Shown here in pieces: positions 2,551-58,500 of a stretch of 64,000 bases of DNA. This DNA comes from Cyanophora paradoxa CCMP329 (lineage: Eukaryota; Plantae; Glaucophyta). The position numbers and the translations under genes are program-made. The notes beneath the pieces are model-generated. The model was not told where the DNA came from and made no database searches. It was given only the letters and a program-made list of their open reading frames with translations. The DNA is taken from positions 1-64,000 of the forward strand of contig QPMI01000173.1 of NCBI GenBank assembly GCA_004431415.1. Reading direction: 5' to 3'. Position 1 is the first letter of the stretch; the number at the start of each line of letters is the position of its first letter.

Positions 2551-3255
<705 letters not shown>

Positions 3256-3780
3256 TGAGTCATGACCAATTCAAGCTTCCTCTTGTGTTGCTGATTTGGC
3301 ATCGTGCAGGACCTCCGCCTCTCCCTCCGTCCCTCCTTTCCCTCTTAGCCATCCCTTGTGCGTAGACAGGTGTGTAAATCTTAGGCCATAAACATTGCAG
3401 CGAATGATCACAGAGTGTTCAAGCAAGCACTTTTCGGGTTTAGGTTGAACTGCACTTTCTCTTTCCCCACTTCCTTCAAGTACTGCTCGGCGCTCGCAGC
3501 ATCGAAGTCTGAAGCAACTGATAGTTCACGGTACACAAACGAAGCTAACCACATCGGAGTTGTTTGTCATGCGGGTCGGAACGGGCGATGGATCGATCAT
3601 TAAACGCAAACACAACGAACGACTGAGATACGAACGCTGGTATGCGAGCAGGCAAAGACGGACGAGAAGCAGCACTTCCGCCGGCGCCTGGAGACGATCT
3701 TTGTGTCTGCGTGGCTTGTGAATTGGGGAATTTGCATTTGGTGAAAGAGGAGTCGGGGGCTGATCATGAGCTCAAGGCAA

Positions 3781-3860
3781 TTTCCTCCGATTAGCGTATA
3801 TTATGTTTTAGAAGCCATCACACAAACGGTCCGGCAATTAAATGTTATCGTCTTTGGAAA
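3781..3860 (-). ncRNA. Box C/D snoRNA, U54/SNORD54-like, copy 1, with non-canonical boxes
   Basis: Terminal stem TTTCC/GGAAA; box C AAGACGA (3854-3848); D' CGGA (3833-3830); C' GTGATGG (3821-3815); guide TAATATACGCTA (3803-3792) complementary to the conserved 18S rRNA segment UAGCGUAUAUUA; box D CGGA (3789-3786). Confidence 0.8.
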
Positions 3861-4030
3861 CTGGCCGAGTCGGTCCATCCGAATGAAAGAAGAAGAAACG
3901 CACACAGAAGGTCTGGCGCCGGCCGGCGCAGGCGAGATCGTGGCCGCGAAACAAGGGCAGACTACTGCTCAGGAGAGTTAGACAGGACTACACGGGATTC
4001 AGCGGTTGGTGGGAGAGTCGCGCAAGTGAA

Positions 4031-4109
4031 GTTCCTCCGATTAGCGTATATTATGTTAAAGCCATCACGCAAGCGGTCCGGCAATCAAGTAGGTTTTCGT
4101 CTTCGGAAC
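4031..4109 (-). ncRNA. Box C/D snoRNA, U54/SNORD54-like, copy 2, with non-canonical boxes
   Basis: Terminal stem GTTCC/GGAAC, a compensatory change relative to copy 1. Same boxes (C 4103-4097, D' 4080-4077, C' 4068-4062, D 4039-4036) and identical guide (4053-4042), while the spacers have diverged. Confidence 0.8.
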
Positions 4110-4383
4110 GCTTTAGGCGGTGCCGCGTCGGGTGCACCTGATTGCTGGGCGTGTGGACGTCGCGTTATCCGCCCGATCGCAGCTTCCCGCGAGCCGATCG
4201 CCGGACGATGCGGCGATCGCACCTGACACGCAGGGGGCGCTTATTGGAGGATGCGATGAGTAACTGCAGCGCTGCGCAGCCGCGCGAAAGTGTGCGTCGC
4301 TAGCGCTGGCGTCGTTAGGCGCTTCCGGGAAATTCCGTGCTGGAAAAAAGAGTCAGGGGTACAATCCAGCAGCTCAGGAAAAA

Positions 4384-4964
4384 ATGTCGACGCCGGCGCG
4401 CCGGCGGCTCATGCGGGACTTCAAGGTGCTGCAGGAGGACCCTCCACAGGGTATCAGCGCAGCTCCGAGGGAGAACGACATTATGCAGTGGGAGGCCGTC
4501 ATATTCGGGCCTGAGGTGCGCTCTGGACGCCCTAGGCCAGCATACACGTGATAGTGGCGCCTGTGCCTCGCCCCCCGGTCGCCGCGCTCGAAGCTTTCGC
4601 GAAGCTGATCCCAGGCACGGCGCGCTGCCGTGGAGCGCAGAACACGCCCTGGGAGGATGGAACCTTCAAGCTGAGCCTTGTTTTCACGGAGGACTACCCC
4701 AACAAAGCGCCCACCGTGAAGTTCCTGACGCGTATGTTCCATCCGAACATCTACGCCGACGGTAGCATCTGCTTGGACATCCTGCAGAACCAGTGGAGTC
4801 CCATCTACGACATTGCATCCATTCTCACCTCCATACAGTCCCTGCTATGCGACCCGAACCCGAACTCCCCAGCCAACTCGGAGGCAGCCCGGCTCTACCA
4901 GGAGAACAAGCGGGAGTATGAGCGGCGAGTAAAGCAGGTCGTAGAAGAGAGCTGGACCTCTTGA
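4384..4964 (+). CDS. RAD6: Ubiquitin-conjugating enzyme E2, Rad6/UBC2 type (2 exons)
   Basis: [14 protein letters not shown]...WEAVIFGPE, intron 4516-4640, then [11 protein letters not shown]...[25 protein letters not shown]...[17 protein letters not shown]. Confidence 0.96.
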
Positions 4965-5659
4965 CCGCCCTTGCGCCAACGCCGCACAGCATGCAACCGC
5001 TCAGCAAGAGGGCGCGCCCAGCATCGAAACGCGTGCAGCTAGCGGCGCCTCCTCTCCGGCCGTCCTCTTCCCGCCCTAGGAGCACCTTCTCCCCTGCGCT
5101 CTGCCTGGGCTTTCCATCGCCTTCCTTCCTTTTGGCGCCTATATCTCACTCCTCGTCGCATCAACTTCAGCCCTTTGTCTCCATCCCATGTTCCTTTCCT
5201 CTTCATGTTCTGCTGTCGGCGGTACCAACTGTAATTGTACGTTCCTTTTTTCTTGCACCTGCACGCGTTTTGCCGGGCGTTTCTTCTGGCCCAGTTCTGG
5301 GTTGCGCTCCTTTCGACTTGATCTGCTTCAATCCGTCTTATCCACTGGTCGTCTCGTTTTGTCGGCTTCCGTGGCCGTAAGCTTTCACCCTCGGGCTTTC
5401 AATTGGACAGGCCGCGGCCTAGGGCCCTGGCGGTGCTAGAACAGCGCGCGCGCGACCCCTCAGATCCGCTCAGATCAGATCCTCAGAGCATGCTTATGAG
5501 AAACAGGGCATGCACGGGAGCCGCATGCGCAACACCGGCAACTTGCTAGCGGGGGCCCGGGCGGGGGTGCGAGACGGGGTACAGCGCGTCTTTCAACTCC
5601 GAACTGGCGACGCGGGCTTAGCCGTAGGAAGGCGAGCCTTGGCTGAGGAAAGCGAGCGC

Positions 5660-7763
5660 ATGGAAGATGCAGCCAGCGACCGCCGCCGCAGGGGATCCGT
5701 CAGCGCTCGCTCAACCCCACAGCCAGCGGAGCCCCAAATGCCCGAGCCGCCGCCTCCTGCGATGGTGAGTGCCGCCCCTTGAAGCCCGCAGCCGGATGGC
5801 CTTAGCTACGGTTTTTACGTTTTTGGCGCAGAACTTCGACCCGTCCAACTTGCGGCCCTCGCAAGCGGCTCCCCGTCCAGAGGTCCAGGAATTCTCCGCA
5901 ATGAGAATACAGCGGTTCTGGCGCTCCCGGACCGTGCGAGCCGCCCAGCTGCGTTCGGGTTGCGATGCTCTAACCCGCGGCCTGCCCGCGGCCCGCAGAA
6001 CGTGCGGATTTACAAGTACTACAGAGATCTTATTTACTTCAGGGAGCGCGGCAACCCGCGCCAAATGCTCAAGAGCATCAACCCTCGCGAGGCGAGTCTG
6101 CTGGACGCGGCGGCCGGCGTGCACGTCCGTTTCCGGCTTGGGGGGGATGCTTTCCCGCCGAAGATCTATTACAAGATCTACACGCATGCAGCGCTGTGCG
6201 ATGTTGGGGCCTTCGCCCCGCGGGATTACACGCAGTACACCAACCCGCGGCCAGCGGATCTCTTCAACAAAGGGCGCTCCCTGCCGCGTGCGCGGCCCGC
6301 GCTTGACCAGCCGACCCCTTGCTTCGCTGCTGACGGCGCGGGGCAGCCGACGGGCGTGCAAACTGGTACAAGCGCGTGGAGAACAACGGATGGCGGCCGG
6401 TCACTGAGACGGTAATGCGGGGCGAGGACAACGTGACGCAGGTAGAAACTCGGAGCTGGGCTCGAAAGCCGTGATGCGCTTCCTTACGATCGGCAGAGCA
6501 CGGCGGCGGCGGCACGCGCGTTCCACTACTCGCGCATCAAGCGGCGCGAGCAGGTGGGGCACCTGACGTTCAGCTTCAGTCGACTGCCGCGTTGATTGGA
6601 ACCCTTTTACAGGTTGCCAAGCAGAAGAAGAGCCGGAAGATCGAGTGGATGATGAAAATGTGGGAGTCAATCGCATCTAGGTGCCCGCTGCTCTCTGAAC
6701 CGCATTTCGTGCAGGTACCGGGAAGGAAAGCAGCGCGAGGAAGGGGACGGCGGTGCGGACGGGCCCCGCCCCGGCAGCGGCGACGCCGACGCCGACGGCG
6801 GTGCGGGTAGCTTTTCCCTCCCCCGGCCCGCACCGGCGGGAGCTGAGCGTGGTGGGCTACAGAATTGGACGAATTCGAGATGGACAGGGAGGCGGAGAAG
6901 CTGCTCCAGTGGACCGCCGGCCTGGACTTCGAGGTAGCCCCTCCCCCCCCCCCCCCCCCCCCCCCTCCCCACACACACACACACACACACATGGCGATGC
7001 CAAGCGTACCCCCCGCAGGACTACCACTCGAACTGGGCGACTTTGGCGACGACGGGGCGCTCAGACGGTGCGCGAAAGAGGGCGGGGCGGTGCTTCGAAG
7101 GGGGCCTCGCCAACGGGGGCGGGGGCACTCAGGGATGGCGCACCTGTTGGTGCCCCAGTTCCGGTTCGAGGACGAGCTCGACATGGACGACGCATACCCG
7201 TACGGGGGGCTACCCGCGATGTGCGGCCCCCCACGCGCGCAGGCCGGCACAAGCCCCCTGACGCCCCACTCCCCGCCCGCAGGCCGGAGATGCAGCCTGC
7301 ACCATCGCCGTCGCCGCCGCCGCCGGCAGCCGCTGGCCACGCCGGCTCGAACGGCTCGCTGCAAGGCTCGTCGAAGTCGGGCAAGAAGCCGGGCGCGAGG
7401 GGGGATACCCCGCCGGCGTCGGCGGGGGCGCCCATCGAGCCCTGGGATCGGTCTGTCCCGGCGAGCCCCTCAGTCCCGCTGGCCGTCGCCCCGCCCGCCG
7501 CCGCGGCCGGAGCTTCCGGCGGCTCGGAGAAGGGGTCTCATCGGGGGCCCGGATCGGACAAGGGCGGTGCCGGGTCGGAGAAGGGCGGGACGGGCGGCGT
7601 GCCGGCGGCCTCTGGCTCGGAGAGGTCAGCGGGGGCCCCGTCGGGAGGGGCGGGGCCAGGCGGGCTCGGCTCGCGGCCGGCCAGCGGGAGCAGCGTGGCG
7701 TCGTCGGCGGTGGCGTCGGAGAAGCTGAGGCCCGCCCCAGAGCCCATCGGCGCGGGGGGCTAG
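5660..7763 (+). CDS. C11orf65/MFI-like IQ-motif protein with a low-complexity C-terminal tail; multi-exon, start uncertain (5660 or 5738)
   Basis: IQ motif AMRIQRFWRS, plus INPREASLLDAAAGVHVRFRLGG..FPPKIYYKI, WYKRVENNGWRPV, FHYSRIKRR, KIEWMMKMY and LLQWTAGLDFEDY..W. These match my recollection of the C11orf65 family. Confidence 0.85.
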
Positions 7764-7997: not shown

Positions 7998-10900
7998 ATG
8001 AAGCGAACTGCGGATGGCGAGCCTAAGGCAGCGCTTGCAGCTGCGCAGGCGACCGCCCCAGCGGCAGCGGAGGCAGCGGAAGCGGAAGCGTCAACTGATC
8101 ATGACGAAGTCTCCAATGGGCCGAGCCTCGACGACTTGCCTGACGAGCTGCTGCTGTCAATCATACAGCGTGTTGGCATGCGCTCAGCGCTGTGCCGGGC
8201 GCGCTTGTGGGCTGTCAGCAATCGCTTCGCCCGGCTGCTCGACACGGTCAAGTGGACGAACCCGGACGGCTTCCTGCAGATCCCAGTGAGGATTCTCGAT
8301 CCGCGACCTGACACGAACGCTGATGTTCTGGCCGTGGGCCAAAAGGAAGCGAAGGATCTAGAGGTCCTGGCGAGGTCAGTCCCACGCTTATGCGCGCTTA
8401 CACCTCAATCATTCTCTGCAATACACAAGCGTTGCGCGCTTGGCACTCATCCGCCGCTGGCCGCTTACGCCACACCGCAGGCTGCTCAAGCGCCGCATAC
8501 TGGCGGGCCCGCGGCGCCTGGCGCTGCTGGTGGACGTCAACAGCAGCTTCCTGGTGGGAGCGGTCGGCCATCGCGGGCTCGCGCGGCTCCTGCGGGCGGT
8601 CAAGAGCCTCGGGACAGTCGAGAAGCTCGTCATCGAGCTCGGTACCGTCGTCGATTCCCCCAACGGGTGCACGTGGCCAGGCGAGCTCTTCGCGTGCATC
8701 CTCTCCGGTGCGACTCCGCTCTTCTCCGCCCCGCCCCGCGCGCGGGGCCGCCCGGCGTGAGGCACGGGCAGCGATGGAGGGGTCCCGCTCGCTCCGGTCG
8801 CTGGACTTCGCGTCGCAGCGGCCCAAGCAGGGCCTGCGCCCCAAGCTCTGCGCCCTCGGCATGCCCGACCAGTGGCGCGCACTCCTCTCCACCCTCCCTG
8901 GTGCCCTCCACGTCGCCCCGCCTCCTGCACGCGCGCCTCACGGGGCCGCGCCTGCAGCGCTGACGTCGCTGCGGCTGCCGGCGACCGGCTTCGGGCGGGA
9001 TCATGTCACCGCCGTCGCCGCCTCCGTACCCCGCCTCGAAGTCCGCCACTTCCCGCTTCCTTCCCCCCCCCCCCCCCCCCCCCTCCCCCCCCCCCCCCCT
9101 CCAACCCCTTCCGACTCCTCTTCCCGCAGGTCCTCTCGCTGGGCGTGGCGGAGGCAAATGCTCTCCTGCCCTCGCGGCCCTCCCCGCCCTCCGCAACTTT
9201 GGTCCGCCAGTCCGAACCCCAACCCATCCAGTCCGATTTCGCTCGATGCCGCGTTGACCCGGGATCGATCCAGGGGCCTTCCACAACCCGCGCACGTTCC
9301 GCGACCGCTTCTTCTCCTTACCCGTCGAAGGTCCCGCCGCCCTCAGCCTGCGGTAGCCCCCCCCCCCTCCCCCCTCCCCCCCCCCCCCGCCCCTTGCCCT
9401 CCCCACTGCGTACCCCCTGACCTCCCTTTTCCCCCCGGGTACAGCTACCTGACGCTGGAGGGGGACACGAGCGCCGAGGCGCTCATCGCCATCCAGCGCT
9501 ACGAGCACCTCGAGCTCCTCAAGCTCGGGGTGCGCCCTCCCCGGCGCCCCGCCCCCGGCCTGGACGCCACTCGATTCTCCTGGTCCCAGTGCTCCGCCGC
9601 TCGCTCGAGCCTGCCCTTCTGGGACTGCCGGCGTCTGCTGAGCCCCGGACCGCCTCCCCCCTGCAGCTGGTGCAGGAGACGGTCGTGAACTGCCTGCACT
9701 TCGTCGAGCACCTCAGCCGCCTCGCCAGGCTCCGGTTCGCATCGCCCCGGGGCCCTCTCGTCGTCGCCCCGCCCCCCGCGCGACGCCCGCGCAGAGACTT
9801 CCGGGTGACGCTGCGGGGAGACGGGCGCACGTTCCTCGAGGCGGTGGCGCGCGCCGCCGACAGGATGCCCGCCCTCGAGGCCCGCCCCGCGCCCCTCCCA
9901 GCGCCCTGCCCCTCGTCGCCCACACCCTCGCAGGCCTTTCGCGCCGTCTTCGAGCGCGAGGTGGAGAGCGCGCGCGTTGCCTTCCTCGCCAACCACTTCC
10001 CCAAGAAGCTGCTCGGCTGGGAGCACCGCGCCTGCGGCACCCCCCTCTCCCTCCACGAGGCCCAGGTCCCCTCCCCCCGCCCGCCGCGCAGCCCGGCGCC
10101 GCCCGCGTCGAGCGGCGCGGGCAGGCGCTGGCGGGGTGCGAGCGGCTCGAGCGGGTGTGGCTCTGGCACGACGCGTCGCAGCCGCTGCCGCGCGGCGCCT
10201 TCGAGGCCCTCGGGCGGCTCCGGGAGGAGAAGTTCGGCTCGCGGCTCCGCATCTCCCTCCTCGCCGCGAACCCGGAGCAGGTGGCGCCCCTTCCCCGGAG
10301 CCCTAGACGGGACCACACTGCAGAGGCCGCGCCATCCCGGAAGCGGGCCGGGGGTGACGGGGGGGCAGGGGGAGCGGGCGCGCGGGGAGCTGGGGGAGGC
10401 GGTGCCGCACGCGGCGGTGGAGGTCGTCGCGGGGCAGCGCGCCGTCCCCGTCGTCCCCGTCGTGCGCCCCCCGCCCCCCGCCCGCCCCCGCCCCCGCCCA
10501 CCCTCTACCTCCCCTCCTCTACCCCTGCTCGCCCCTGCACTTGCTCGAGGCCCGCCTGGCGCTAGCTCCCCTGCCCCTCCGCCTCGGTCTGCCTGCGCCG
10601 GGGGAGCCGCTAAGCGGCTGCGCAGGGCCCCGCCCACCCGCTCCTCCAGGCACAGCAGCAGTTCCAGCAGCAGGTGCCGCCCCGATCCCCCGGCACGGCG
10701 CGGGAAGAGGGGTAGCGTGCTGAGGCGGCCCCGCGCAGATGCAGCAGCAGCAGGCGGTGGCGCAGCAGATCCAGCAGCAGGCCCTCCAGCAGGTGCGAGG
10801 CTGTCCCCGCCCCGGGCTAGAGCGCCCTCCTCCCTGCCCTGCTTCCTTCGCCGAGGCCGCCCCGCTCCGCCCCGCCCCGGCGCAGGTCGCCCATCTCCAC

Positions 10901-28330: not shown

Positions 28331-29594
28331 GGTACGAGTCAGCTCGCTCGCCGTGGCCGGCGCTAGCACAGCATCGATATCTACGGGTACAGCTACTATT
28401 TCGCTGAACGACTTGGAGCTCGCGATCGAGCTTGAACGCGACTTGAGCTTGACCTCCCAGCCCGGCTCAAGCCTTGGTTCAGCCTTGCAGTGGCTCAAGC
28501 TTAAGCACTTGACTCAGTGACGGCAAGCCGCAGGCCTACTTAACTCGGAAGCAGCGCGTGGCCCTGAGCTCGAGGCTGCGAGGAGCTCGAGATGCATATG
28601 CATGAGGAGCGGATCCGGACCCGGGAACTAGTACTCGACGACGCGCCGGCGCCACTACTGCGCTGCGCATGCGCATGCGCATGCATATGCTTGATCATGT
28701 TCAGAAAAAAATCGATTTTTTTGGTACGATGGCGAAGTGGCCAGGAAGGGGTCCGAAGGGCTTCTCCTTTCCTCAAGGCCGACTTGCCAGTTGCAATATT
28801 AATTGGAAAGAAATGCATTGATCATCGGATCACAAATATCATTATAGAGGATTCGAACTCTCGCTGCGGCCCAGGGCTGATACAGCTAGATGACGTCGAC
28901 ACGTGCACTGGGCGTGTGACATATATATAGTATAGAGCCGCTGGTACCGCGGCCGGTTATCATAGTATTCCGGATTTTCTGCTGATCATGATCCATGGCC
29001 AGATAAAACCTTGGTGCTCTTGAGAAGATCTACCGTACTGGGATAAACACAGCTTGCACTGCAGCTAAAGCTAGAGCTAACGAAAGTCCAATTCAATCAC
29101 TACATCCTTATAATATCAAAGGATCTAGATGAAACCGTTGAACTCTCATCATAGTATCAAATGGCGATGATCAATATCACGGCATGCGCACGCCATTGAA
29201 ATTGACCCTACTAGGCTAACAATCGCGTGGAGACCACTATAGCACATACATGTACATGCACTCATTATCTCAGAAAAGCAGAAAGCCAAGAGATCGATGG
29301 CTCGGCGAAAGAGTGAGAGCGAGGATAAACTGTTTTTGTAAACTGGTTACATATATAGCGCTGCTCATCATGGCATCTCAGAGAGCTCGAGAACATTAAG
29401 CTTGAATCCGAACAGCTTGAAAAACAAAACCCAAAGTGCCTGCTGGTGCTACCTTGAACAGCGTTAATGAAGCCGCCTTGGACGCGAAAAGATAAACGTA
29501 AGCTTCGATCAGTAGCTGATTTCGAATTCACGAGCCCGACGCTTGACTGGTACTCGGAGGAGCCTCGGAGGCCGTGGGAGGGGGAGCCTCATGA

Positions 29595-35500: not shown

Positions 35501-38500
35501 CGCGCGCGCACCGGCTCCGCCTTGCACTTCTTGTCGAAGAGACCGACCAGCGCCTGCGCGAATCACAGCGTCAACGCCTCGCGGCCACGCGACAAAGACA
35601 GGACAAGAGGGAGACAAGAAAAGAAGGGGGCGGACACGCATGGCGCGGCTGCGCTCGCCGCTGAAGGCGGACGCGTTGGACTGGGAGGCGGCCGCGCTCG
35701 AGCCCTCCGCCCCCGACGCCGATGTGAACGCCTCAATCCCGGAGTCTGGCGCGGCGGCCGCCGCCAGGCGAAGCACAGTCAGAGTTGCGCCAGAGCGCGA
35801 GCTGACGTTCAGTCCTAGCGCGGCCGTTCCGGCAGCGGGGCCGAGCCGAACACAATATATGATTTCGATGCGGAGGGTGTGGACGGACCGGGGTCTTCGC
35901 CAAGGGCGACGTGTGCATCTAGGCCGAGGCCTAGGCTTGAGCACACGATTTCGGCGTAGATTGCCAGCGACGGCTCCAGCCCGAAAAGCGCCTCCACCAC
36001 TGCACCGCCCCGCGTCAGTCCCCGTCGCAGCGGATGCTAGCGGACAACACGCTAGCTTGGAAGCTTAAGCCAGGTCATGCATATGGTCAATAGACGGTGC
36101 TTCGGATTTGTGGGATGGGGGCGCGGGGGCGGGGCGGGGCGGGGCGGGGGGGCTCGCCGGCGCGGAGGACCTCCCTGTGGAAGCGCGCGTCGAGCTCCCG
36201 CGCCCGCTCCGAGCTCTGCCCCCCCCCGCCGCCCTCAGGGTCTCTTGCGGCGAGAGGCTCCCACGCAAGTTGCAGCTTCCTAACGAGCGCTGCGGGCGGG
36301 AGCGGGGGCCGGGGCGGGGCGGGGCGGACCTGGCCGTCGATGGAGGCGGCGCGGCGCCGGCGGACGGTGGAGAGGAGGTCGCCCCCGGGGGCCCCCGGCA
36401 CGCCCAGCCGCCGCGCCGCCCTGCCACCCAAGGGGGGAGTTTCGAGGAGGAGGAAGGGGCGTTTGGGAGGAAGGCGCATGCGCACCAGCGGCGCGGCGGC
36501 TTGAGACGCGAGGCGAGGCCGGCAGCGCCGGCGCCGGCCCCCGACGCGGGGCTCACCTCCTCCTCCTTGGGGGGCGGGGAGCCCCCCGGGGCGCCCTCGG
36601 GCGCGGTGGCCTCCCGGTCCGACGCGCTGCCGTAGACCTGCGCGCGCTCCCCTCAGCTCCACGCTCCCCCGAGCTCGCTCCGGGCGCCGGGGAGCGAGCC
36701 TTCGCGGAGAGGCGGGCGAGGGCGGGGCGCAGGGCGAGGGCGTCGGCGACGGCGCCGCGGAAGGCGGCGAAGGGGACGCCGTCATCGGGGTCGCTCTCCG
36801 GCAGCTCCGGCGGCCCGCTCCGCGCGCTCGCCACGAGGACCTGCCGCGCAGCCCAGGCCGAAACGCTTCAGGTGGGCGCCCGCAGAAGTAAGGCTCTGGA
36901 GTCGGCTCCACTCGACGTTGGACAGAGGTGGAACTAGAGGTGGGACTAGAGCTGGAGCTGGAGCTGGAGGGGAGGGGAGGGGAGGGAGAGGGGGTGCGCG
37001 GGCAGCGGCAGCGGCTCGCCCGACGGCGTCGCACCTTGACGCCGGCGACGGTGGGGAGCCAGGCGGCGACGAGGTTCGCGAGGGCCGACTTGCCCACCCC
37101 GGGGCCCCCCTCGACGAGCAGCAGGCGCCGGCCCGGGCCCTCTCCGGGCTCGCCGTGGCCGCGCAGGGGCGCCGGGGGGGCGCTGGGCGGGAGGAGTGGG
37201 CGGAGGCGCTCGCAGGAGAGCACGAAGTCCTCCAGCGCAAGCAGCTCCGAGTGGCGCCCGACGAAGCCCTCCGCCTGCCGCCCCCGATGAGGGCTCGAGG
37301 GGATGAGGTGCAGAGCGGGCGGGGGCACCGCGGAGAGGGGGCTCCACGTGAGCGAGTTCCGGCCCGGGGCGCCCCGCTTCCGCACGCTCGAGGAGCGCGA
37401 AAAGGTCGACCCGACGCTGTCGCTGCGGCGCCGGCACCGGCGCCGGCCGCGGGTGAGGCGACAGCGCGATGCGTCCAGGGGATCGTTCAGCGCAGAGGGC
37501 ACAGCGTTCTGTTTACACGAGAGATGATCTAAGAGCTTTTTCCGGCTTTGTGTAGTTTGAGCTCCGTAAGAGGTGGGGGTGTGGGGGGCGGATACCTTGG
37601 GAGGCGCGAGCTCTGCTGCGAGGAGTTGCCCCGCATGGAGCCGCCGGCGGCGCCGCTGGCGAGCCACGCGGGGTCCATCCCAGCCGCGAACCCGCCGCCC
37701 CGGCCCGACTCGTCCCCGCGGGGAGTCAAGTTGGCATTCCTGCGCGGAGCCGAGTCCCGAGGCGCTCCAGTCAATTCGCAAGCGGTTCCACGAGTCGCAG
37801 AGGGTGGAAGCTCGCGCACCGGCCGCGATCTCGGAACCTGAAGCTGCGCCCGCGGTTCAGGGAGGAGATGCCAAGGCCGCTGGCGAGGCTGAAGGAGAGG
37901 GTGGGGAGGGCGAGGGCCTGCGCAGAGGCGTCAGAAGAAGCCCGCGAGCTGGAGGAAGGAGCGCGCCTGCTCCAGGGCCGCCTCGGGGAGCTGGCAGCGC
38001 ATCGGGGGCGTCCCCGGCTGCGAGCCGCCCTTGGCCGACCGCTCGACTCCCGACCCGCTGCGGGGCGTCGGCCGCCGACGTCAGATTCCGTGCAGAGCCG
38101 AAGCTTAAGAGGTGCGGCGCACCTCTGTGGCGGGTTGTCGTCGTCGGAGGAGGCCGGTGGCCAGTTCGCGAAGCTCGGGTACGAGTTGTTCAGGCGCATG
38201 TTCGCGCCGGCGAGCCGGGGCGACCCGCGCTCCCGCTCGGGCATCGCCAGCCGCTGCAGCGGGCTCCCCGGGGCGCGGGGCAGCAGCACCGGGCTCCCGT
38301 TCGACATCGAGACGGCCGTGCTCGCGCTCGCGAGGCTCTCGGGGACGCTGCCGAGGCCGCTGCCGAGGCCGCTGCCCGGGCCGCTGCCGCCGCCGAGGGC
38401 GTCGACGGGGAAGTGGCCGGGGACCTGCGGGCGGATGCTGGGGGAGAGGCTGGAGGGCCGCTGGCGCGCCGAGCTGCCGAGCGCCATGTCCGACGACGGC

Positions 38501-41500
38501 CGCAGGAACGTGATCGGCTGGAACTGCGGCTGCGCGACACCGCCAGCGACAGCCGACTCCTCCAGAGTCCTCCCCGGCGCCGGCGGCGTGTCGCGCCGCG
38601 CCGCGTCCGAGGGCGACGCCGGCCGGCCGTCGCCCCGCGCCATGTGCAGCTGCAGGTCCACGATCTCGGACACGGGCGACTGCGGCCGAGCCGCGGGGGC
38701 CCTCCCCTCGCCAGCGACCCGGTCTTCCCGGTCTTCCCCGGGCGCTCCGCCCGTGCCGATGCTTGCCAGCAGCCGCGTGGTGAGCGACGCCCGCGGCGCG
38801 TACCCCTCCACCCTGAACGCCTCGATGCCCTCCTCCTTGCCCTTCACCGCCACCGTCCCTGCCCGCCCCAGCGGCGTCGGCGCGGCTCGCGTGTGCGGGG
38901 GGGCGCGGGGGCCGCCTGGGGGCGGACCCAGCGGGGTGACGAGGAAGGGCTCGGGCTGCGGGAGCGCCGCCACCGTCGCCCGGTCCACGACGATGCCGCG
39001 CCCCAGGCCCATCAGCCGGCTCGCCATGTTGATCTGCAGCCCCGGCCCCCGGCCCGCCCGCTCAGTGCCCTGCGGCACGGGGCGCGGGGCGCGGGGCGCG
39101 GGGCGCGGGGCGGACCGGGTCACCCAGCACAGTGTAGTCCGCCCGCGCCGCGTTGCCGATCTGGCGGCGCGTGAGCCGAGGCGAGTCGCCAGCCGCACGC
39201 GCCGGGGCGCCCCGCCCGCACCAGCCCGCAGTACACCCGCCCCGACGTGATGCCGATCGCGACGGCGCCGGTGCCGATACGCGCGAGCGCGGTCCGGATG
39301 CGAATGGCGGCGGCAACAGCGCGCTCGCCGTCGTCGGTGTGCGCTTGGCTCACGCCCCACGTCGCGAACGCCTGCGGGAGCGTCGTCGGCGGCAAGTGGG
39401 GCGGCGGGGCGAGGGGAGGCCGGGGCGGGGCGGACGGTGGCGCCCTTGTCGTCGACGAGGAACTGGCGGAAGGAGCCCTCGGTGTCGGCGACGGCCGACT
39501 GCACCTCGCGGATGCACGCGTCGAGCACGCCGAAGGGGTCGGAGGCGGGGGGCGTCGACGGGGCGTCCGAGTCGGGCGGGGGGAGGAAGCCGGCGAGGGA
39601 GACGGAGGCGAGGATGGAGCGGACGCGCCCCGCGCCCCCAGAGACCGCCACCGCGCGCGCCACGTCGAAGGGGAGGGGCACCTGCACGAAGGCGGCCGAG
39701 ATCGTCCGCAGCTCGCTCCAGAACCTGGCCACGGGAGAACTCTGTTAGAACGAAACGTGTTCGGTCTATCGTATCGCTGTGCGTGGAACGCACGTGGACA
39801 TCGGGTTTCCCTGGAGGAGCCTGAGGACTTCTTCGGGTACGTACGGCCCGAGCCGCTCCGCTTCCCGTGGGTCGACCACGCCCAGGGGCGCCCCCGGCGG
39901 CCACACGCCGCCAAACCCCTCGATCCGACGCGCGGCCCCGCGCTCTGTTTCCGAGCGCAGAAAACCGGCGGACGAGAGCTGCCGGGGCGTTAAGATTCGG
40001 TTTGCGGTGCGTCGGAGGGGCAGCAGAGGCTGCAAGACCGCGGCTCACCTCGCCGAGCGAGATGACGTGGAAGTGCTTGTCGTCGCCAGCCTTGGTCGGG
40101 TTCGCTGCGGGGATCGGCTGCACGGTGGCATCAGAACAAAATGCGTTTCAAAATGATGTCGCGATTGCTATCATAGTATGCACCCGCCGCACGGATATCC
40201 TCAGAAAGGCGCTGACGTGCACGGCGACCTGGCCGCTCTTGGAGAGGCCGATGCCGTCGGAGACCTGCGGGGGCGGCGGGCTGAGGGGCGGCGGGCGGGG
40301 CGGGGGCGGCCGGGGCGGGCCTGCTTGACGGGGAGGCCGAGGAGGACCATCTCGCGGCGCGAGGGGAGCCCCGCGTGCAGCTCCAGCACCGTCCCCATCC
40401 CCAGCGCGCAGTGCAGCCTGCCCGGCCTCAGCGCTCGGCCGCCGCGCGGGGGCGCCGGGGCGCACGAGAAGTGGACGCTGTTGGAGACGGCCTTGAGGAG
40501 GCGCGCGGCGCACTCGAGGGCCGCCGACGCCGCCTCGTCGGCCCGCGCGCTCGAGCCCCCCGCGTACGGCTTCATCAGCGTGATCGCGTCGCCCTGCCGG
40601 TTGGCGTCGGGCGGGGCGGGGCGGGCCGGGGGGCGGGACCGGGGCGGCGCACGGCGAATTTGATGGCGTCCATCTCGTACTCGGCGGCGATGGCGAGCAT
40701 GTCCGCCAGCACCTCGTTCACCTTCCGCGACAGGTGGTCCGCCTGGCCCGCCCCGCCCCGCCTCGGTCGCCCCGAGCTCGAGCGCCCCGCGCGCGCGCCC
40801 CCGCCCACCGCCCCCGGCGCACCGCCCACCGCTCCCGCTCCCGCTTCATTCGCTCCTGCGCGTCGACTTTGTTCTTCTTCCGACGCGCGATCACATCCAG
40901 CTCTGCCGCCGTCAACTCGGCTGCGTTTCGTCAGCTTGGCGCGCGGGCGTGCATCCGGCAGCCGCGGCGCACCCCTCTCCTCCTCAGAGTTCGATTCGAT
41001 TTCAGCTGAAGCGGGGTCCGAGTCTTCTTCCGAGTGGACGCCCCCAACGCCCTCCGGCGCCGCCGCCGCCGGCTCCGGTAGCTGCAGTCGCAGTTCAAAC
41101 TTGTGATCAGCGCGGCCAGCCCGGAGACGGAAGGGTCGCGGCGCGCGCGGCGGTCGGACCTCGATGCTGCCCTGCTCGCTGACGCGGCGGGCGCGGAGCT
41201 GGGGCGGGGGCCCCGCGTTGGCGTCGGCGACGAGGCGCGAGGCGAGGGCGCTGAAGCCCGACAGGTCCGCCACCAGCAGCACTGCGCCCCGCCCCGCCCG
41301 CGCCCCAGTCGGCCCCGGCACGCGCCCCGCCCGCCGCCCCGCCCGCCGCCGCGGCCGCCCCGCTCGCACCGGCCTCGTACGTGCGGAAGGAGCACTGCTG
41401 CGGGTCGACCTCGAGCTCGCTCGCCTCCGCCTCGCCGGCCGACGGCGGCGCGCGCCCCGCGTCGATGCGCAGCGCCTGCCGAAGCGCCTGCGGCACGAAG

Positions 41501-41535
41501 GCCGCCAGCGGCGGTGGAGCCCCCTGCCCAAGCAT
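29595..41535 (-). CDS. Soluble adenylyl/guanylyl cyclase-like protein (ADCY10/sAC architecture: two class III cyclase domains, STAND NTPase, helical/TPR-like tail), copy A; start uncertain
   Basis: C1: VADLSGFSAL, IKFAGDAIT. C2: SELRTIS, RQFLVDDKG, IGITSGRVYCGLIGNAARADYTVLGDPINMASRLM, VKGK. NTPase: FVGRHSEL, Walker A VEGGPGVGKS, Walker B VIVLEDVD (about 35428-35452), ARGNP, FGFLHGATRDILY. Confidence 0.88.
31728..31885 (-). repeat. Coding 24-bp tandem repeat encoding (F-x-S-V-R-G-G-x)n in cyclase copy A
   Basis: Six CGCACGCT cores at 24-bp period, translating as CSVRGGTAFASVRGGNAFSSVRDGGMFGSVRAGNLFGSVRGGGIFGSVRGGTVF. Confidence 0.8.
34524..34627. repeat. Intronic 19-bp unit GCGCGTGAACGGCCGAGGC, 3 copies separated by G tracts
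   Basis: Copies at 34524-34542, 34568-34586 and 34609-34627. Confidence 0.85.
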
Positions 41536-42413
41536 CGCCTGGCGCGCGCCGCCAGCGCTTGTGCGGGCCTGAAGCTGCTACCTTCGCTGCTCGGCCGCGA
41601 GCGCTCGTTTCGGACAACGGGACACGCGCCGCCTCATCATCGTGGCAAGCTGAAGAGCCGCGACGCCCCGATCTCGTGCGGCGCTGCTGCGGGGGCTCAA
41701 AGAGTCTTTCCCTTCTGCTCACTTGGCGTACCGCGCAGAGCGCGTACTAGCTGCTGCCGATCGGTGATTCGAAGATCTAGAGGAGGATGACGACACGCCT
41801 CCTTGTGCCAGCTCGCTCGCGCGCGCGCGGCGTCGCGCCCGAACAGCAGCTGCGCGCTTCGATGCAGCTGGCAACCCGCGCCTTCGATGTTGGTCGATGT
41901 CCCGCGGCCGACTGTAATGCGCAGAGGCCGGGAATCGAAACAAGTGCCACGGTGGGCTTCAAGCGGCTGATATTGCGCAAACCGCTCTGCAGCTAAAATC
42001 ACCTTGGCGAGGGCCGGGCCGGGCGCCCCGCGCTGCTCGCTGCTGCCGCAGTGCCGCTGTGTTGCGCTGTTGCACTGCGACAAGTTACTAAGCAAAGCGG
42101 GGTATCGCGCATAAGTTGATAAAGCTGCCTGGGTCGACGACTCGACGACGTCGACGAGTCGACGACTCGACGTACGTACGGCACTGGCAGGGTTGACGCC
42201 GCCGGGCGCCGGCGCCGGCTCCGGCACTGAGCAGTGAGCACTGCACTCATCATGGCATGCTCATCTATCGCGATCGCCGAGTCGGTTGCACATGTTCATG
42301 AGCCTGCAGGCGAGCTTTTGGAGCCCCTTTGAATCTACGCGCCTCTTCAAAGATGCCGAGGGTACACAGATCTCAGTTTGAGAGGGGTACAGCCTCATCG
42401 AGCCGGCGGCCTG

Positions 42414-45988: not shown

Positions 45989-46328
45989 AGCGCGGAGTGC
46001 GGTTTCGCCTTTCCGGATCAGTTCGGGAGTGCAGCAGCGCGTCCCAGCGGAGCTCGATGATCATGATTTTGAAGTGCAACAGCGCATCGCAGCTGGAGCG
46101 GAGCTCGCGGCCGCGGGAGCACGTGTAGGTCAAGTTGGAGTTGAACCTTAGCTGCAGCGTCGCGCTTTGTGAGCCATCGATAAAAGGGGGCCGGAGCTGA
46201 TCAAGCGCGAGAAGCGGTCATGCATATGGTGCATATGTCGACCAGCGCGCCTCCCGATAGCAATCTCGCGCCAGCGTAGGGCAGTTCAGGCCCAAACAGG
46301 CGCTGGCAGTGCTAGTGCGCGCCAGGCG

Positions 46329-49300
46329 ATGCTTGGGCAGGGGGCTCCACCGCCGCTGGCGGCCTTCGTGCCGCAGGCGCTTCGGCAGGCGCTCCACATC
46401 GACGCGGGGGGCGCGCCGCCGTCGGCCGGCGAGGCGGAGGCGAGCGAGCTCGAGGTCGACCCGCAGCAGTGCTCCTTCCGCACGTACGAGGCCGGTGCGT
46501 GCGGGGCGGCGGCGGGCGGGGCGGCGGGCGGGGCGCGTGCCGGGGCTGACTGGGGCGCGGGCGGGGCGGGGCGCAGTGCTGCTGGTGGCGGACCTGTCGG
46601 GCTTCAGCGCCCTCGCCTCGCGCCTCGTCGCCGACGCCAACGCGGGGCCCCCGCCCCAGCTCCGCGCCCGCCGCGTCAGCGAGCTCGGGGATCCGGACGC
46701 CGAGGTACCGCCCTGCGCCCGCGCCTCTCGCTTAGCGTGCGTGGGCTCAGTTGGTGCCCCGACCCGCAGCCGGGAATGCCTACGAGCGGTCAAGATGACA
46801 GTGATTCGGATGACGAAGCGAGCTCCCGATCCAGTGACTCCGTCGCAAGTGCGCGCGCGTGGCGTTCACCATCTCATTTAGCCTTCTGACCTGAGCCCCA
46901 GACGGCGGGAATGAAGACGAAAAGCGGCGGCGGCGGCGGCGGCAGTCGCGCGAGATGGTTCGGGAACGGGAGCGAATGAAGCGGGAGCGGGAGCGGTGGG
47001 CGGTGCGCCGGGGGCGGTGGGCGATGCGCCGGGGGCGCGCGGGGCGCTCGAGCTCGGGGCGACCGAGGCGGGGCGGGGCGGGCCAGGCGGACCACCTGTC
47101 GCGGAAGGTGAACGAGGTGCTGGCGGACATGCTCGCCATCGCCGCCGAGTACGAGATGGACGCCATCAAGTTCGCCGTGCGCCGCCCCGGCCCCGCCCCC
47201 CGGCCCGCCCCGCCCCGCCCGACGCCGGCCGGCAGGGCGACGCGATCACGCTGATGAAGCCGTACGCGGGGGGCTCGAGCGCGCGGGCCGACGAGGCGGC
47301 GTCGGCGGCCCTCGAGTGCGCCGCGCGCCTCCTCAAGGCCGTCTCCAACAGCGTCCACTTCTCGTGCGCCCCGGCGCCCCCGCGCGGCGGCCGAGCGCTC
47401 ACGCCGGGCAGGCTGCACTGCGCGCTGGGGATGGGGACGGTGCTGGAGCTGCACGCGGGGCTCCCCTCGCGCCGCGAGATGGTCCTCCTCGGCCTCCCCG
47501 TCAAGCAGGCCCGCCCCGGCCGCCCCCGCCCCGCCCGCCGCCCCTCAGCCCGCCGCCCCCGCAGGTCTCCGACGGCATCGGCCTCTCCAAGAGCGGCCAG
47601 GTCGCCGTGCACGCGAATACTTTCCTCCGAATCTCCATATGGAGGGCGAGCGTTGGCCCTCTCGGAGGCGCTTTCCCCTCCAATGTGAATGAGGGCCGGG
47701 GGCAGTGCCTCGCGTGGAAGCAGGACGGCGCGGACCGCAAGTTCCACATCGTTCAGCTCGACGACGACGACGTCCGCTCCATCCCGCCCTCGCCCTCACC
47801 GCTCCAGCACACCCTTACCTCCATCTCTCTCTCAGCTCCTCTCCAGCCAACTCTTCTCCCGGGAGCGGCCGCCCGCGGCCCGATCGCCCCCTTCGGCCTC
47901 CGCCCTCGCCCTAGGCCTCGCCATGGGGAGCGCCGCCGGCCTCAGGCTTTGCCCCTACGTCCCGGAGGAGGTTCTGCAGCTGCTGCAGGGAAACCCGATG
48001 TCCACGTGCGTTCCACGCACAGCGATACGATAGACCGAACACGTTTCGTTCTAACAGAGCTCTCCCGTGGCCAGGTTCTGGAGCGAGCTGCGGACGATCT
48101 CGGCCGCCTTCGTGCAGGTGCCCCTCCCCTTTGACGTGGCGCGCGCCGTCGCCGTGTGGACGGAGAGCCGCCGGTACGATCGGTCTCTCTTTCTTATAAA
48201 ACTACGCTTGTCGCCTTCTCCGCATTGGAGCGAGGCGGCGGCTGGCGGCGCAGGTCGCGCTCGCGGAGGGCCTCCGAGGCGAACGGGACGCCCGTGTTCG
48301 ACCTTTCGGGGCCGGCCGACGCCGAGGAGGCCCCGGCCTCGCTTCGCACCCTTGGCGCCGCCTCCGACCCCTTCGGCGTGCTCGACGCCTGCATCCGCGA
48401 GGTGCAGTCGGCCGTCGCCGACACCGAGGGCTCCTTCCGCCAGTTCCTCGTCGACGACAAGGGCGCCACCGTCCGCCCCGCCCCGCCCTCCCCCGCCCCG
48501 CCGCCCCACTTGCCGCCGACGACGCTCCCGCAGGCGTTCGCGACGTGGGGCGTGAGCCAAGCGCACACCGACGACGGCGAGCGCGCCGTTTCCGCCGCCA
48601 TTCGCATCCGCGACGCGCTCGCGCGTATCGGCACCGGCGCCGTCGCGATCGGCATCACGTCGGGGCGGGTGTACTGCGGGCTGGTGCGGGCGGGGCGCCC
48701 CGGCCCGCGGCGTGCGGCTGGCGACTCGCGTCGGCTCACGTGCCGCCAGATCGGCAACGCGGCGCGGGCGGACTACACTGTGCTGGGCGACCCGGTCCGC
48801 CCCGCGCCCCGCGCCCCGCGCCCCGCGCCCCGCGCCGCAGGGCGCTGAGCGGGCGGGCCGGGGGCCGGGGCGGCAGATCAACATGGCGAGCCGGCTGATG
48901 GGCCTGGGGCGCGGCATCGTCGTGGACCGGGCGACGGTGGCGGCGCTCCCGCAGCCCGAGCCCTTCCTCGTCACCCCGCTCGGTCCGCCCCCAGGCGGCC
49001 CCCGCGCCCCCCCGCACACGCGAGCCGCGCCGACCCCGCTGGGGCGGGCAGGGACGGTGGCGGTGAAGGGCAAGGAGGAGGGCATCGAGGCGTTCAGGGT
49101 GGAAGGCCTCGCCCAGCGCTCCTCCCTCGCCAGCCGCCTGCTGGCGACGCTGAGCTCCAGCGGCGCCGGAGCGGGCGGGGGCGAGGCGGATGCGCCCCGG
49201 GGCTCCCGCGTCCGCCGGAGGAGCTCCTTCGCGTCGGTGGAGGGGGCCCAGGGGCGCGCCTCGATGGCGCGGCGCGTCTCCCTCGCGCCCCCGCAGCAGC

Positions 49301-52300
49301 CCGACCTGCCTTCTTCGGGCATCGATATCGCGGCGGCAGCGGCGCGGCGGTCCAGCACGGGCATGGGGCACGGCGACTCGCTCGGGGCCGAGGCCGCCCC
49401 GCGCCTTCTCTTCTCGGCACCGACGCCGTCGTCGCGGTCCCGCTCGCGCGCCTCGCTCACCCTCGCCGAGCCCCAGCCCGAGCCCGAGGAGCCGTGCGCC
49501 GCCTGCGACGAGCTCGAGGCGCGCCCCTTCAACTCCCCTCTCTTCCCTCCTCTCCTTTCCTTCCTCTTTTTCTTTTTCCTTCTTCTTCGTCTCGAAAAAA
49601 CGCTTCTCGCAACTCACTGCCTACTAGGGCGTGCGGGCGGTGCCGGTGGTGCTCAGTCCAGCGCACCGCTCCTCTTCGCCCATGCTGCGCGTCTCGTCGC
49701 CCGAGCTGGAGGATCTGGAGGGGGCGGACCTGCGGGGGCCCCACCCCCTCTCCCCGCCCCTCGCGAGCGCCCCGCAGCCCTGGCGCTTTCCCCCGGGGTG
49801 CGGGGATCACTGGGATGAGTCGGGAGGGCCCCGCCGGCTCGACGGGGGAGGGGGCGTCGCCTCGGGCTTCGGTGTGGACCTGCGCCTCGACGTCGATGAG
49901 CCGGAGAGCGGCACGAGGTGCGCGCCCTCGACCCCGAGCCGCCCCCGCCCCGCCTCCCTCCCCTCCTCACTCGCCCCTCCCGCCAGCGCCTGCTGCGCCG
50001 CCGAGGCCCTCTCGCCTGGCGCCCTCCCCAGTCTCCCTTCCGACGATGCCGAGGCCTCCGCCGCCGGCTCCCGCGCCTCCCTCGCGCTCGCCTACCACGA
50101 GACCGCCTCCCAAGCCGACTTCTTCTCTTCTCCGTGAGGGACCCCGGCCCCTCTGCGTTTCTCTGCGTCATCACAAGGCACGGGATGCGCAGGGCGCGGG
50201 GGCTCGGCTCCCTTCAGAGCCGCGGGAGCGCCGACGACATCCTCGCGGCGACGGAGACCGAGCCGCGCTCCTCTCTCAGCAGCCGGCGGCCCTCCCGCGC
50301 GCTGCCACCGCCCCCGGGGCCCCGGCCCCGCAGCCTCTCCCGCCAGATCAACGGAAAGGCGCGACACGCTCGCGGACGCTCGCTCAGAGCTCCTTTAGCT
50401 TCCGCCGCGCCTCACTGAACGCTTCGCTTGCTGCAGGTCTTCTTGCGCAACTCGGACGCGCACCGTTTCGAGCACTCGCACGCGCGGGCCGGTGCCGTCC
50501 TCTTCGGCGCTGGGCGCTCCTGGAGCCCCCTCGCGCCGGTGCGGCGCCCGCCCGCGGCCGCCTCCCCGCTGCCGGCGCCGCCTGAGGCCTCGATCCGAAC
50601 TCTTGTCGCAGGCGGACGGATTCGTCGGACGGCACGCCGAGCTGCACGCCATTGAGGACTTCGTACTCTCCTGCGAGCGCCTCCGCCCGCACCTGGCGTC
50701 GGGCGCCCCGCCCCCGCCCATTACCGCCCCTGCCGCCGCCTCGCCGCACGTCCTCTTCATCGAGGGGGAGGGCGGCGTGGGCAAGTCGGCGCTGGCGAGC
50801 CTCGCCGCCGCCTGGCTCTCCTCCGTCTCCCGCCTCCGCCTCGTCTTCGTCGGAGGGCGCCTCGCGGCGCCGGCAGAGGCCGGCGAGCCCGGGCTGGAGG
50901 AGCCGGCGCCCTTCCACGCCTTCCGCGCCGCCCTCGTCGACCTCCTCGGCCTCAAGCCCGTGCTCGCCGCCATCGCCGCCGCCCTCTACGGCCGCAGCGG
51001 CGCCGGGCCCGACGCGGCGCCGCCCGGCCCCGACTCGGCCTCCCCGACCTCGCGCGACCCGCTCGGCGCCGGCTCGCGCTTCCTGCCGCCCCGCCGCCTC
51101 ACAGCGCCGAGCGCGCACGCCGGGGCGGACGGGGCGGCCTCTAGCTCGCGCAAGGGGGCGGGGGCGGGGCGGGGGGACGAGGGGGACTTGTACTGGGACC
51201 GCGCCCGCGAGCTGGACCGGCAGTTCCGCCACGACGTCCTCCGCTCCGGTGCCGGAACCACCGCGAAGCCCAGCAAGTCGAAGCTGCCGCGAGCGCCTTC
51301 TCACTTGCTCGTCCCCGCCCAGTGATCGAGGCGCTCTTCCGGCTGGACACGGGGCTGGCGATCCACGCGGAGGCCCTCTGCGCCATCCTCCAGCTCTTCG
51401 CCCTCCGCACCGCCGGCAGTGCGCGAACTCGACCACCGTGCTCGAATCCGAGCAGAGACGGGCTGACGGTGACCGTGCTCAGACTTGGGGACGGATCCGC
51501 CGTCGAGCGCGGACGACTCGATCGCGAACGCGACCACCGTCGACGAGGCGGGCAGCCGCAAGAAGCAGCTGCAGGTGCGGCGCCGGCCTCGCTCTCGGGG
51601 CATCGAAGGCAGGCTTGCGCCTGCTGAAGCGGGCCCGTGCGCGAAGATCGTGCTGGGCGTCCTGCCGGTAGAGCGCGTCTCCTCGCACTCCCCTCTGCCG
51701 GTAGAGCGCGTCTCCTCGCACTTGGGGGGGCAGGGCGAGCAGCAGAAGGGCTCCCTCCTCTCCCTCGTCTCGTCCGGGGACTCGGGCGGCGGGAGCGCGC
51801 ATCACTCGGGGAAGGCGTGGGCGGCGCCGGCCTCGAGGGACGGGGGCGACCTCCACGTGCAGCCCGACGGAGCGCAGGCCCGCGGGGCCGGGGCGGGGGA
51901 GGGGGCGGGGCGGGGGGGGCTGTTCGGGTTCCTGCACGGGGCGACGCGGGACATCCTCTACGCGCGCCTCACCGAGGAGCGCCGCCGCCTCCTCCACCTC
52001 CGCGCCGCCGCCGCCCTCGACGCCCTCGACCCCGTCCGCCCCGCCCCGCCCCGCCCCCGCCCCGCCCCCGGCCCCGACCCCGGCCCCGACCCCGGCCCCG
52101 ACCCCGCCCCCTCGGCAGGCGGAGCGGGAGCAGATGGGCGTCTCGGCGACGGCGCTGGCGGCGCACTTCAACAGCGCGGGGGTGAAGGAGCGGGCGGTGC
52201 ACTTCCTGACGGTGGCGGGGCAGGCGGCCGTGCAGTCCGGCTCCCTCACCAAGGCCATCGCCGCCCTCGAGGACGCCGTCCAGCTCGAGGACGACGTCCG

Positions 52301-57540: not shown

Positions 57541-58500
57541 TTGTTGCCTGTGTAGTTATACAGCTATAGATCACATGCCCGCCACGCGCCTGCCTCGCTG
57601 CCGGTCTAGCGGCTCAGCCGGGGGCCCTACGAGCGCAAGCGAACGGCGCGCCTCTTTTGAGCAGGCCTGTGCCCCCGCAGGAATCGGCGGGGTCGCTGCG
57701 GGAGTCGGTCGGGGAGCGGCGCCGGAGCGTTGCGTTCCGCGAGACGCCGTCGCGCCGCGGTCCGCCGGGCGCATTCGGAGCGCAACGGTGCTGGAAGCCG
57801 CCCCGCGACTGTGCGCCCGCGACTAGCATGCATATGGGTTCGGACTCCGGAGTTTAACGTTGCCGCGGGCCGCGCCGGCGCCGCGCGCTGCATGCACTGC
57901 AGCTGCGCGATCAGGGACGGTCATAATATACCCCCCCTCCGGCGGGGTACGGCCCCGTACGGGCGCTATATATGCATGCAAATGCTGGGATGAATCGCAT
58001 AAATCGCATACGAAATCGATGTATATGATGACGACCATATCGCATTAAAAACAATTAATCTGAATCGGCCGCCCAATTTGGCCAATCTGATTTGCGCTTT
58101 GCATTGCCGGGTACCAAGTAGCTTGGGGCTAGTAGCGTGTTGCCAAGAGCTTTCGGGTACAGCGTTGTTGACCGTATGGGCAAAGCTTACGAAGACTCGA
58201 AGCTTAAGACTCGAAGCTTTGGGCGCGCAACGCCGCGCATGCGTTTGCGGCGCCGGCATGCCGCAGTGGCGGCAGTCCTAGCCTAGTAGTGCGCGCGCGG
58301 CCCAGCGCCGGCAGCGGCGGTCACGCTCCGTCGGGCCGCTCCTAGCCTAGTAGGCTTGCGATCGACTGCAGCAATTGCAAGCAAGTGCACTGCGCACGCG
58401 CGCGGGCGCCGTCACGCGAATTCCCGACCTTCGGAAGCTGGCAATCGTCTGGGATAGCCCACTAGCGTAGGAGCAGGCGCGCGCGTGGTGGTCGGGGGAG

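Follow-up and report, generated by a model that had tools for sequence, protein, structure and literature searches.

Two box C/D snoRNA-like elements of Cyanophora paradoxa with a variant terminal kink-turn and a predicted guide for the U54 site of 18S rRNA

Two short elements on the minus strand of Cyanophora paradoxa contig QPMI01000173.1 have the layout of box C/D guide RNAs, with other boxes than RUGAUGA (C) and CUGA (D). The question raised by this locus is whether such elements can be guides for 2′-O-methylation, of which nucleotide, and what becomes of the kink-turn on which such RNAs are built. The window analyzed is the whole stretch of 64,000 nt (64 kb) at positions 1 to 64,000 of that contig.

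Copy A is a conserved unit of 79 nt (4031-4109, minus strand) and copy B one of 80 nt (3781-3860, minus strand), with a spacing of 250 nt between them. In copy A, the edges of conservation coincide with a terminal stem formed by GUUCC (4105-4109) and GGAAC (4031-4035). In copy B, the stem consists of UUUCC (3856-3860) and GGAAA (3781-3785) and can be extended to 8 bp, CAGUUUCC/GGAAAUUG (3778-3863). Read from 5′ to 3′, the first half of each unit contains the 5-nt stem arm, a 3-nt bulge, GACGA, a spacer of 14-16 nt, and box D′, CGGA (4077-4080 in copy A and 3830-3833 in copy B, minus strand). The second half contains a loop of 8 nt, box C′, GUGAUGG (4062-4068 and 3815-3821, minus strand), a spacer of 9-12 nt, the guide UAAUAUACGCUAAU (4040-4053 in copy A and, with identical sequence, 3790-3803 in copy B, minus strand), box D, CGGA (4036-4039 and 3786-3789, minus strand), and the closing stem, the 3′ arm of which starts immediately after box D in copy A. 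This anatomy, established directly, agrees with an earlier note on the same DNA, which had described two minus-strand paralogs of about 80 nt with common boxes and stem.

Box C reads AAGACGA in both copies (4097-4103 in copy A and 3848-3854 in copy B, minus strand). Of its seven positions, two depart from RUGAUGA, with A in place of U2 and C in place of U5; the G, A, and G-A on which the sheared pairs depend are retained. Box D reads CGGA in both copies, as does box D′, and not CUGA; its U-to-G change matches the U-to-C change of box C. With GAA (4102-4104) in copy A or AAA (3853-3855) in copy B as the bulge, the 5-bp stem is followed by exactly 3 nt, after which tandem G.A and A.G pairs can form (then, in copy A, C-G and G-C), a geometry proper to kink-turns. 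The internal C′/D′ motif is present as well, with CGGA, an 8-nt loop, and a GUGAUGG that is unchanged between copies. The predicted fold is low in structure (z near 0), as an open guide RNA should be.

The two units are 84% identical in a global alignment. Their flanks of 60-100 nt show 44-52% identity, equal to the shuffle mean, and conservation therefore begins and ends at the stem arms. The 17-mer made of guide plus box, AATATACGCTAATCGGA, occurs exactly twice in 64 kb (0.02 occurrences expected by chance). Copies A and B differ by eight substitutions and two to three indels, none of which touches any of the four boxes or the 16 nt preceding box D. Assuming an even spread, the chance that the changes spare all 20-22 nucleotides of the boxes and the 16 nt of the guide is (42/80)^8 to (42/80)^10, or about 0.006-0.002 when calculated by hand. 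At the two extreme ends of the unit, both nucleotides are substituted (G-C to U-A), which makes a compensatory pair in the stem; the other changes sit in the bulge, the D′-side spacer, the D′-C′ loop, and the spacer after C′. The diverged spacers and the co-varying terminal stem (GUUCC/GGAAC and UUUCC/GGAAA, with unchanged boxes), already remarked upon in the earlier note, are thereby confirmed. The pattern itself is directly observed. It is what paralogous guide RNA genes under selection usually show, and it speaks against free decay.

We did not find rRNA genes of the host organism within the 64-kb window. The guide was paired with stand-in 18S sequences from other species, namely eukaryotic rDNA contaminating bacterial assemblies, found by using the 18S segment as the pattern. 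Ten contigs of plant-associated or environmental origin were used (L009, L010, L018, L032, L034, L035, L039, L060, L069, and L085), two of which are confirmed as complete eukaryotic SSU/5.8S/LSU units; contigs from human-associated samples, possibly human rDNA, were left out of the pairing. As a contamination of public assemblies, at least 90 contigs filed as bacterial or archaeal (L009-L088 among them) carry eukaryotic 18S rDNA. In viral contigs, the 18S segment was not found.

The D-guide forms 12 contiguous Watson–Crick pairs with AAUAGCGUAUAUUA in eight eukaryotic 18S rRNAs and 11 in two plant 18S rRNAs, as the earlier note had predicted for 12 nt of a conserved 18S segment. Across the ten stand-in sequences, the paired segment is UAGCGUAUAUUA, and the runners-up within some 8 kb have 6-9 pairs. 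Among shuffled guides, 9 of 3000 (0.3%) reach 12 bp anywhere in the 8-kb rDNA locus. An antisense element of at least 10 nt, here with 11-12 Watson–Crick bp on the 18S of ten other eukaryotes, is thus combined with the fifth-nucleotide rule: C4044 of copy A, five nucleotides upstream of box D, is the partner of the target G. This target nucleotide, opposite guide position 5 as counted upstream from CGGA, is the G of UAG at position 598 of one plant 18S; the geometry of guide and target follows directly from the pairing. In Arabidopsis, 18S Gm599, guided by AtU54 and mapped by RiboMeth-seq, is the equivalent of human Gm644 (PMC8053127, PMC8583080), to which SNORD54 has been assigned (PMC11550049). 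The predicted target (plant 18S 598) matches this site of Arabidopsis Gm599/AtU54 and human Gm644/SNORD54. The assignment made earlier, in which the D+5 rule counted from CGGA selects the G of UAG at the U54 site, is correct by the pairing and by the published methylation sites.

The label "U54-like" given to the elements holds for the target site (the G of CCAAUAG*CG) and fails for the family, since the Rfam U54 model has no match at E≤10 on positions 3000-5000. The Rfam snoRNA families as a whole likewise give no match, either in the whole 64-kb window at the gathering score or on 3000-5000 at E≤10. With human U54/SNORD54 and Arabidopsis AtU54, the elements have in common the predicted target G of CCAAUAG*CG, a guide beside box D, and a similar small size. 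They differ from them in box C (AAGACGA instead of RUGAUGA), in boxes D and D′ (CGGA instead of CUGA), and in being unmatched by the covariance models at E≤10. We regard it as probable, from the sequence, that these are two paralogous box C/D snoRNA genes that direct 2′-O-methylation by fibrillarin of the 18S G corresponding to the Gm599/Gm644 (U54/SNORD54) site. As regards the "functional methylation guide" of the earlier note, the anatomy, size, conservation, and guide–target geometry match those of a box C/D guide aimed at the U54 site; from these features we infer production of the RNA, assembly with the core proteins, and methylation.

On the D′ side, copy B contains an antisense element, UUUAAUUGC (3834-3842, minus strand), that can form 9 bp (one G.U) with the 18S segment GCAGUUAAA, a match not significant alone; GCAGUUAAA lies 22 nt downstream of the main guide target. 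The corresponding element of copy A, CUUGAUUGC (4081-4089, minus strand), makes a weak pairing of 8 bp (two G.U) with the same segment when paired by hand. The two A/B substitutions in this element are both transitions, one changing U-A into U.G and the other a terminal A-U into an A/C mismatch. As a second methylation guide, the element would select the equivalent of human U666 or Arabidopsis U621, which is no listed methylated site, and with respect to Am623/Am668 it is 2 nt away and out of register; this role was rejected.

C/D snoRNPs are known to be aided by extra pairing beside the methylation site (PMC3116282). One could propose on this basis that the RNA is of the C/D type with mainly a non-methylation role, for example as a chaperone of the 530-loop-proximal region of 18S acting through two antisense elements. 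The 8-9 bp with GCAGUUAAA, 22 nt from the main target, and the two substitutions, both transitions, would be in line with such a role, and the weakened terminal K-turn would then reflect another protein set or other dynamics. However, 9-bp matches with the same score are present elsewhere in the rDNA, and the main guide fits the fifth-nucleotide rule at a site methylated in plants and animals, for which methylation is the simplest role; a mainly non-methylation role is in our view quite improbable. Because equally strong matches occur elsewhere in the rDNA, the D′-side pairing may be at most accessory and is perhaps due to chance.

For a methylation guide at the U54 site, the proposed mechanism would be as follows. 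The 5′ and 3′ ends would pair as a stem of 5-8 bp, and the adjoining GACGA and CGGA would form a kink-turn with its 3-nt bulge, the sheared G.A and A.G pairs, C-G, G-C, and A-U. This kink-turn would nucleate the assembly of Snu13, Nop58/Nop56, and fibrillarin, and the inner C′/D′ motif (GUGAUGG/CGGA) would be a second, more canonical one. The 12-nt guide beside box D would pair with 18S so that the target G faces nucleotide 5 of the guide.

In K-turn nomenclature, the C stem of the terminal motif ends with C:G and is followed by the loop G/A-A-A, with G.A at 1b.1n, A.G at 2b.2n, C-G at 3b.3n, G-C at 4b.4n, and then A-U. The terminal stem, the 3-nt bulge, the tandem sheared G.A/A.G pairs, the G-C at 4b.4n, the purine at loop position 2 (an A in both copies), and the internal C′/D′ motif are as in a canonical box C/D kink-turn. 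The differences are at loop position 3, the pocket nucleotide of Snu13, which is A and not U in both copies, and at 3b.3n, which is a Watson–Crick C-G and not U.U in both copies. The earlier note had described the same combination (bulged U to A and U-U to C-G in both copies, with the tandem G-A pairs kept), and the sequence bears it out. The C′/D′ motif has the canonical U at loop position 3 and a U.G at 3b.3n with box D′. The change from U.U to C-G in the terminal motif probably went through a U.G state like the one in C′/D′. We note also that D′ followed by CC (4075-4080 and 3828-3833, minus strand) gives GGACC, in which the 1n adenine of C′/D′ is in a GAC context; in human D′ boxes, this context is linked to N6-methylation and to blocked 15.5K binding (PMC5579392), a parallel that is speculative here. 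At the terminal box D, the next base is G and no such GAC site exists.

What is known of canonical motifs indicates how much each change should matter. Both Snu13/15.5K and L7Ae strongly favor U in the pocket, where the base is contacted by E61 and K86 of 15.5K. Mutating the pocket residue harms binding, SELEX with Snu13 nearly always selects U.U, and A or G at loop position 2 raises the affinity for Snu13 (PMC1874613). In human C/D boxes, U:U at 3b:3n and G:C at 4b:4n are strongly conserved (PMC5689011). That the pocket U and the U-U pair matter, as the earlier note assumed, agrees with both sources. Watson–Crick 3b.3n pairs, C-G included, block folding in metal ions alone; the K-turn of human U4, with G-C at 3b.3n, still folds upon L7Ae binding, 15.5K being its natural partner (PMC4382518). 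The C-G pair of the present motif should leave Snu13 binding unblocked, because the 15.5K-bound U4 K-turn has a Watson–Crick 3b.3n pair. After the work of Watkins et al. in 2002, the cost of losing U.U is reportedly to be expected at the later Nop56/58 step.

The kink-turn of the U4 snRNA 5′ stem–loop is thus a relevant comparison, with its Watson–Crick 3b.3n pair and its binding by 15.5K/Snu13. By the rules of PMC4382518, such a K-turn needs protein and cannot fold in Mg2+ alone. Unlike the motif here, U4 has G-C instead of C-G at 3b.3n and retains U at loop position 3. Its stem II is short and capped by a pentaloop, and it recruits Prp31 and not Nop56/58. In Haloarcula Kt-7, the loop sequence is GAA, as in copy A, which would show that an L7Ae-family pocket is able to accept A at position 3. 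Kt-7 differs in having A.G at 3b.3n, in folding without protein, and in being a ribosomal motif bound by archaeal L7Ae and not by eukaryotic Snu13. Of the two changes, the A at loop position 3 is the more surprising one, and published data would predict weaker Snu13 binding by the terminal motif. Since both changes are common to the two copies and kept under selection, the variant motif is presumably good enough in vivo.

A different conclusion could be drawn from the same changes: both copies might descend from one mutated copy and be non-functional or crippled, while a canonical U54-type gene elsewhere does the methylation. Boxes C and D indeed deviate at positions important for Snu13 binding and assembly (PMC1874613, PMC5689011), and an Rfam match is absent. 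Decay, however, would not predict a U-to-C change matched by a compensating U-to-G change. The flanks have been randomised since the duplication, yet none of the 10-11 changes falls in the boxes or the guide; the stem has changed by a compensatory pair, and the C′/D′ motif is intact. We consider crippled copies unlikely. The element is best described as a predicted U54-equivalent guide by its target, without detectable homology to U54, with a terminal kink-turn that is doubly deviant but compensated.

The genes on both sides are on the plus strand. Upstream, at 2790-3248, is a gene which we take to be that of a dynein light chain of the LC8 type (stop at 3246-3248), and downstream, at 4384-4964, one which is presumably that of a RAD6/UBC2-type ubiquitin-conjugating enzyme (E2; ATG at 4384, stop at 4964), both as read by eye from the exon translations. 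Their introns are short, the 5′ sites being GTGCG/GTGAG and the acceptors CAG. Both snoRNA copies occupy the strand opposite to these neighbors and so lie outside the introns of either. The distance from the start of copy A to the E2 start codon is 275 nt, and for this reason the snoRNAs probably belong to a minus-strand transcription unit of their own, divergent from the E2 gene. The non-conserved spacer between the copies (3861-4030, minus strand) contains splice-like signals, CTAAC at 3977-3981, AGs at 3962-3969, and GTGCGT at 3898-3903. Further ones on the same strand are CAG/GTGCAC at 4137 or CAG/GTGCGA at 4222, and CAG at 3707-3709. These minus-strand signals (3700-4225) resemble those of the neighboring genes in being of the GTGCG type. 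A non-coding minus-strand host may carry each copy in a separate intron, 66-74 nt upstream of a 3′ splice site. The putative host transcript has no obvious reading frame and is antisense to the gap between the two plus-strand genes; exact-protein lookup of a spurious ORF over copy B returned no record. A tRNA–snoRNA dicistron is ruled out, as the window is without tRNAs.

This setting also brings up a reading with no RNA gene, in which a DNA element, such as a promoter or other repeat, was duplicated between the two plus-strand genes and resembles a snoRNA by chance. A location 275 nt ahead of the E2 start codon, where a promoter may lie, and the presence of only two copies in the 64-kb window would suit it. 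Against it are eight snoRNA features ordered in register, a 12-nt antisense match that falls on a known methylation site, a compensatory change in the terminal stem, and a conservation that ends exactly at the stem edges; together they make it very improbable. Elsewhere in the window, a large inverted duplication (37167-41547 and 46317-50719) is made up of eight blocks in collinear order, which are 112-612 nt long and 80-99% complementary, with arms about 5-13 kb apart; it is probably a gene-bearing segment present twice in inverted orientation. Long poly-C or C-rich tracts and a (CA)n run are found at 346-397, 1241-1350, 6926-7005, and 9018-9417, in a sequence that is very GC-rich (70-77%).

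Taking the two units as methylation guides, we searched for others of their kind. Box-and-stem scans together with an rRNA-antisense scan gave no further such unit in the 64-kb window; the weak candidates at 58020-58096 and near 28982 are without proper box or stem arrangement. In metagenomes, the pattern GACGA-N30-60-AATATACGCTANNCGGA has eight matches, all due to chance and on bacterial contigs, either within coding sequence or without stems. One of them (L002) has AATTGCCG in common with the D′ region and lies inside a long bacterial ORF. A metagenome relative was not found, and the comparison is therefore between the two paralogs. In the literature searched, the only parallel to a box D of CGGA or a box C of GACGA was the degenerate C′ box UGACGA of snR107 of S. 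pombe, and we found no paper cataloguing Cyanophora snoRNAs.

The earlier note had gone further and suggested a lineage-specific class of snoRNAs with co-evolved core proteins. The window, with no additional element of this sort, does not support a class, and the co-evolution of proteins is not called for by the C-G pair, since 15.5K already binds a K-turn with a Watson–Crick 3b.3n pair in U4 (PMC4382518). We give little credence to the conjecture of a glaucophyte sub-class of box C/D RNAs that would combine a U4-like terminal K-turn (Watson–Crick at 3b.3n) with a purine in the Snu13 pocket. Within it, assembly could proceed via an altered Snu13 pocket, via a second paralog of the L7Ae family, or with C′/D′ as the nucleation site. 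RNAs of such a sub-class, if it is real, would be invisible to finders based on RUGAUGA and CUGA.

Apart from its boxes, the element would be one more guide for a known conserved methylation site, with an ordinary target. Its interest is that of a natural variant at positions usually taken as fixed. Both the pocket U and the U.U pair of stem II are regarded as requirements for snoRNP assembly that hardly ever vary, and here both are replaced. A naturally selected snoRNA in which both have been replaced, one of them through a compensated Watson–Crick pair, would test how strict these rules are in vivo, and it would also illustrate how motif-based finders miss snoRNA genes in little-studied lineages.
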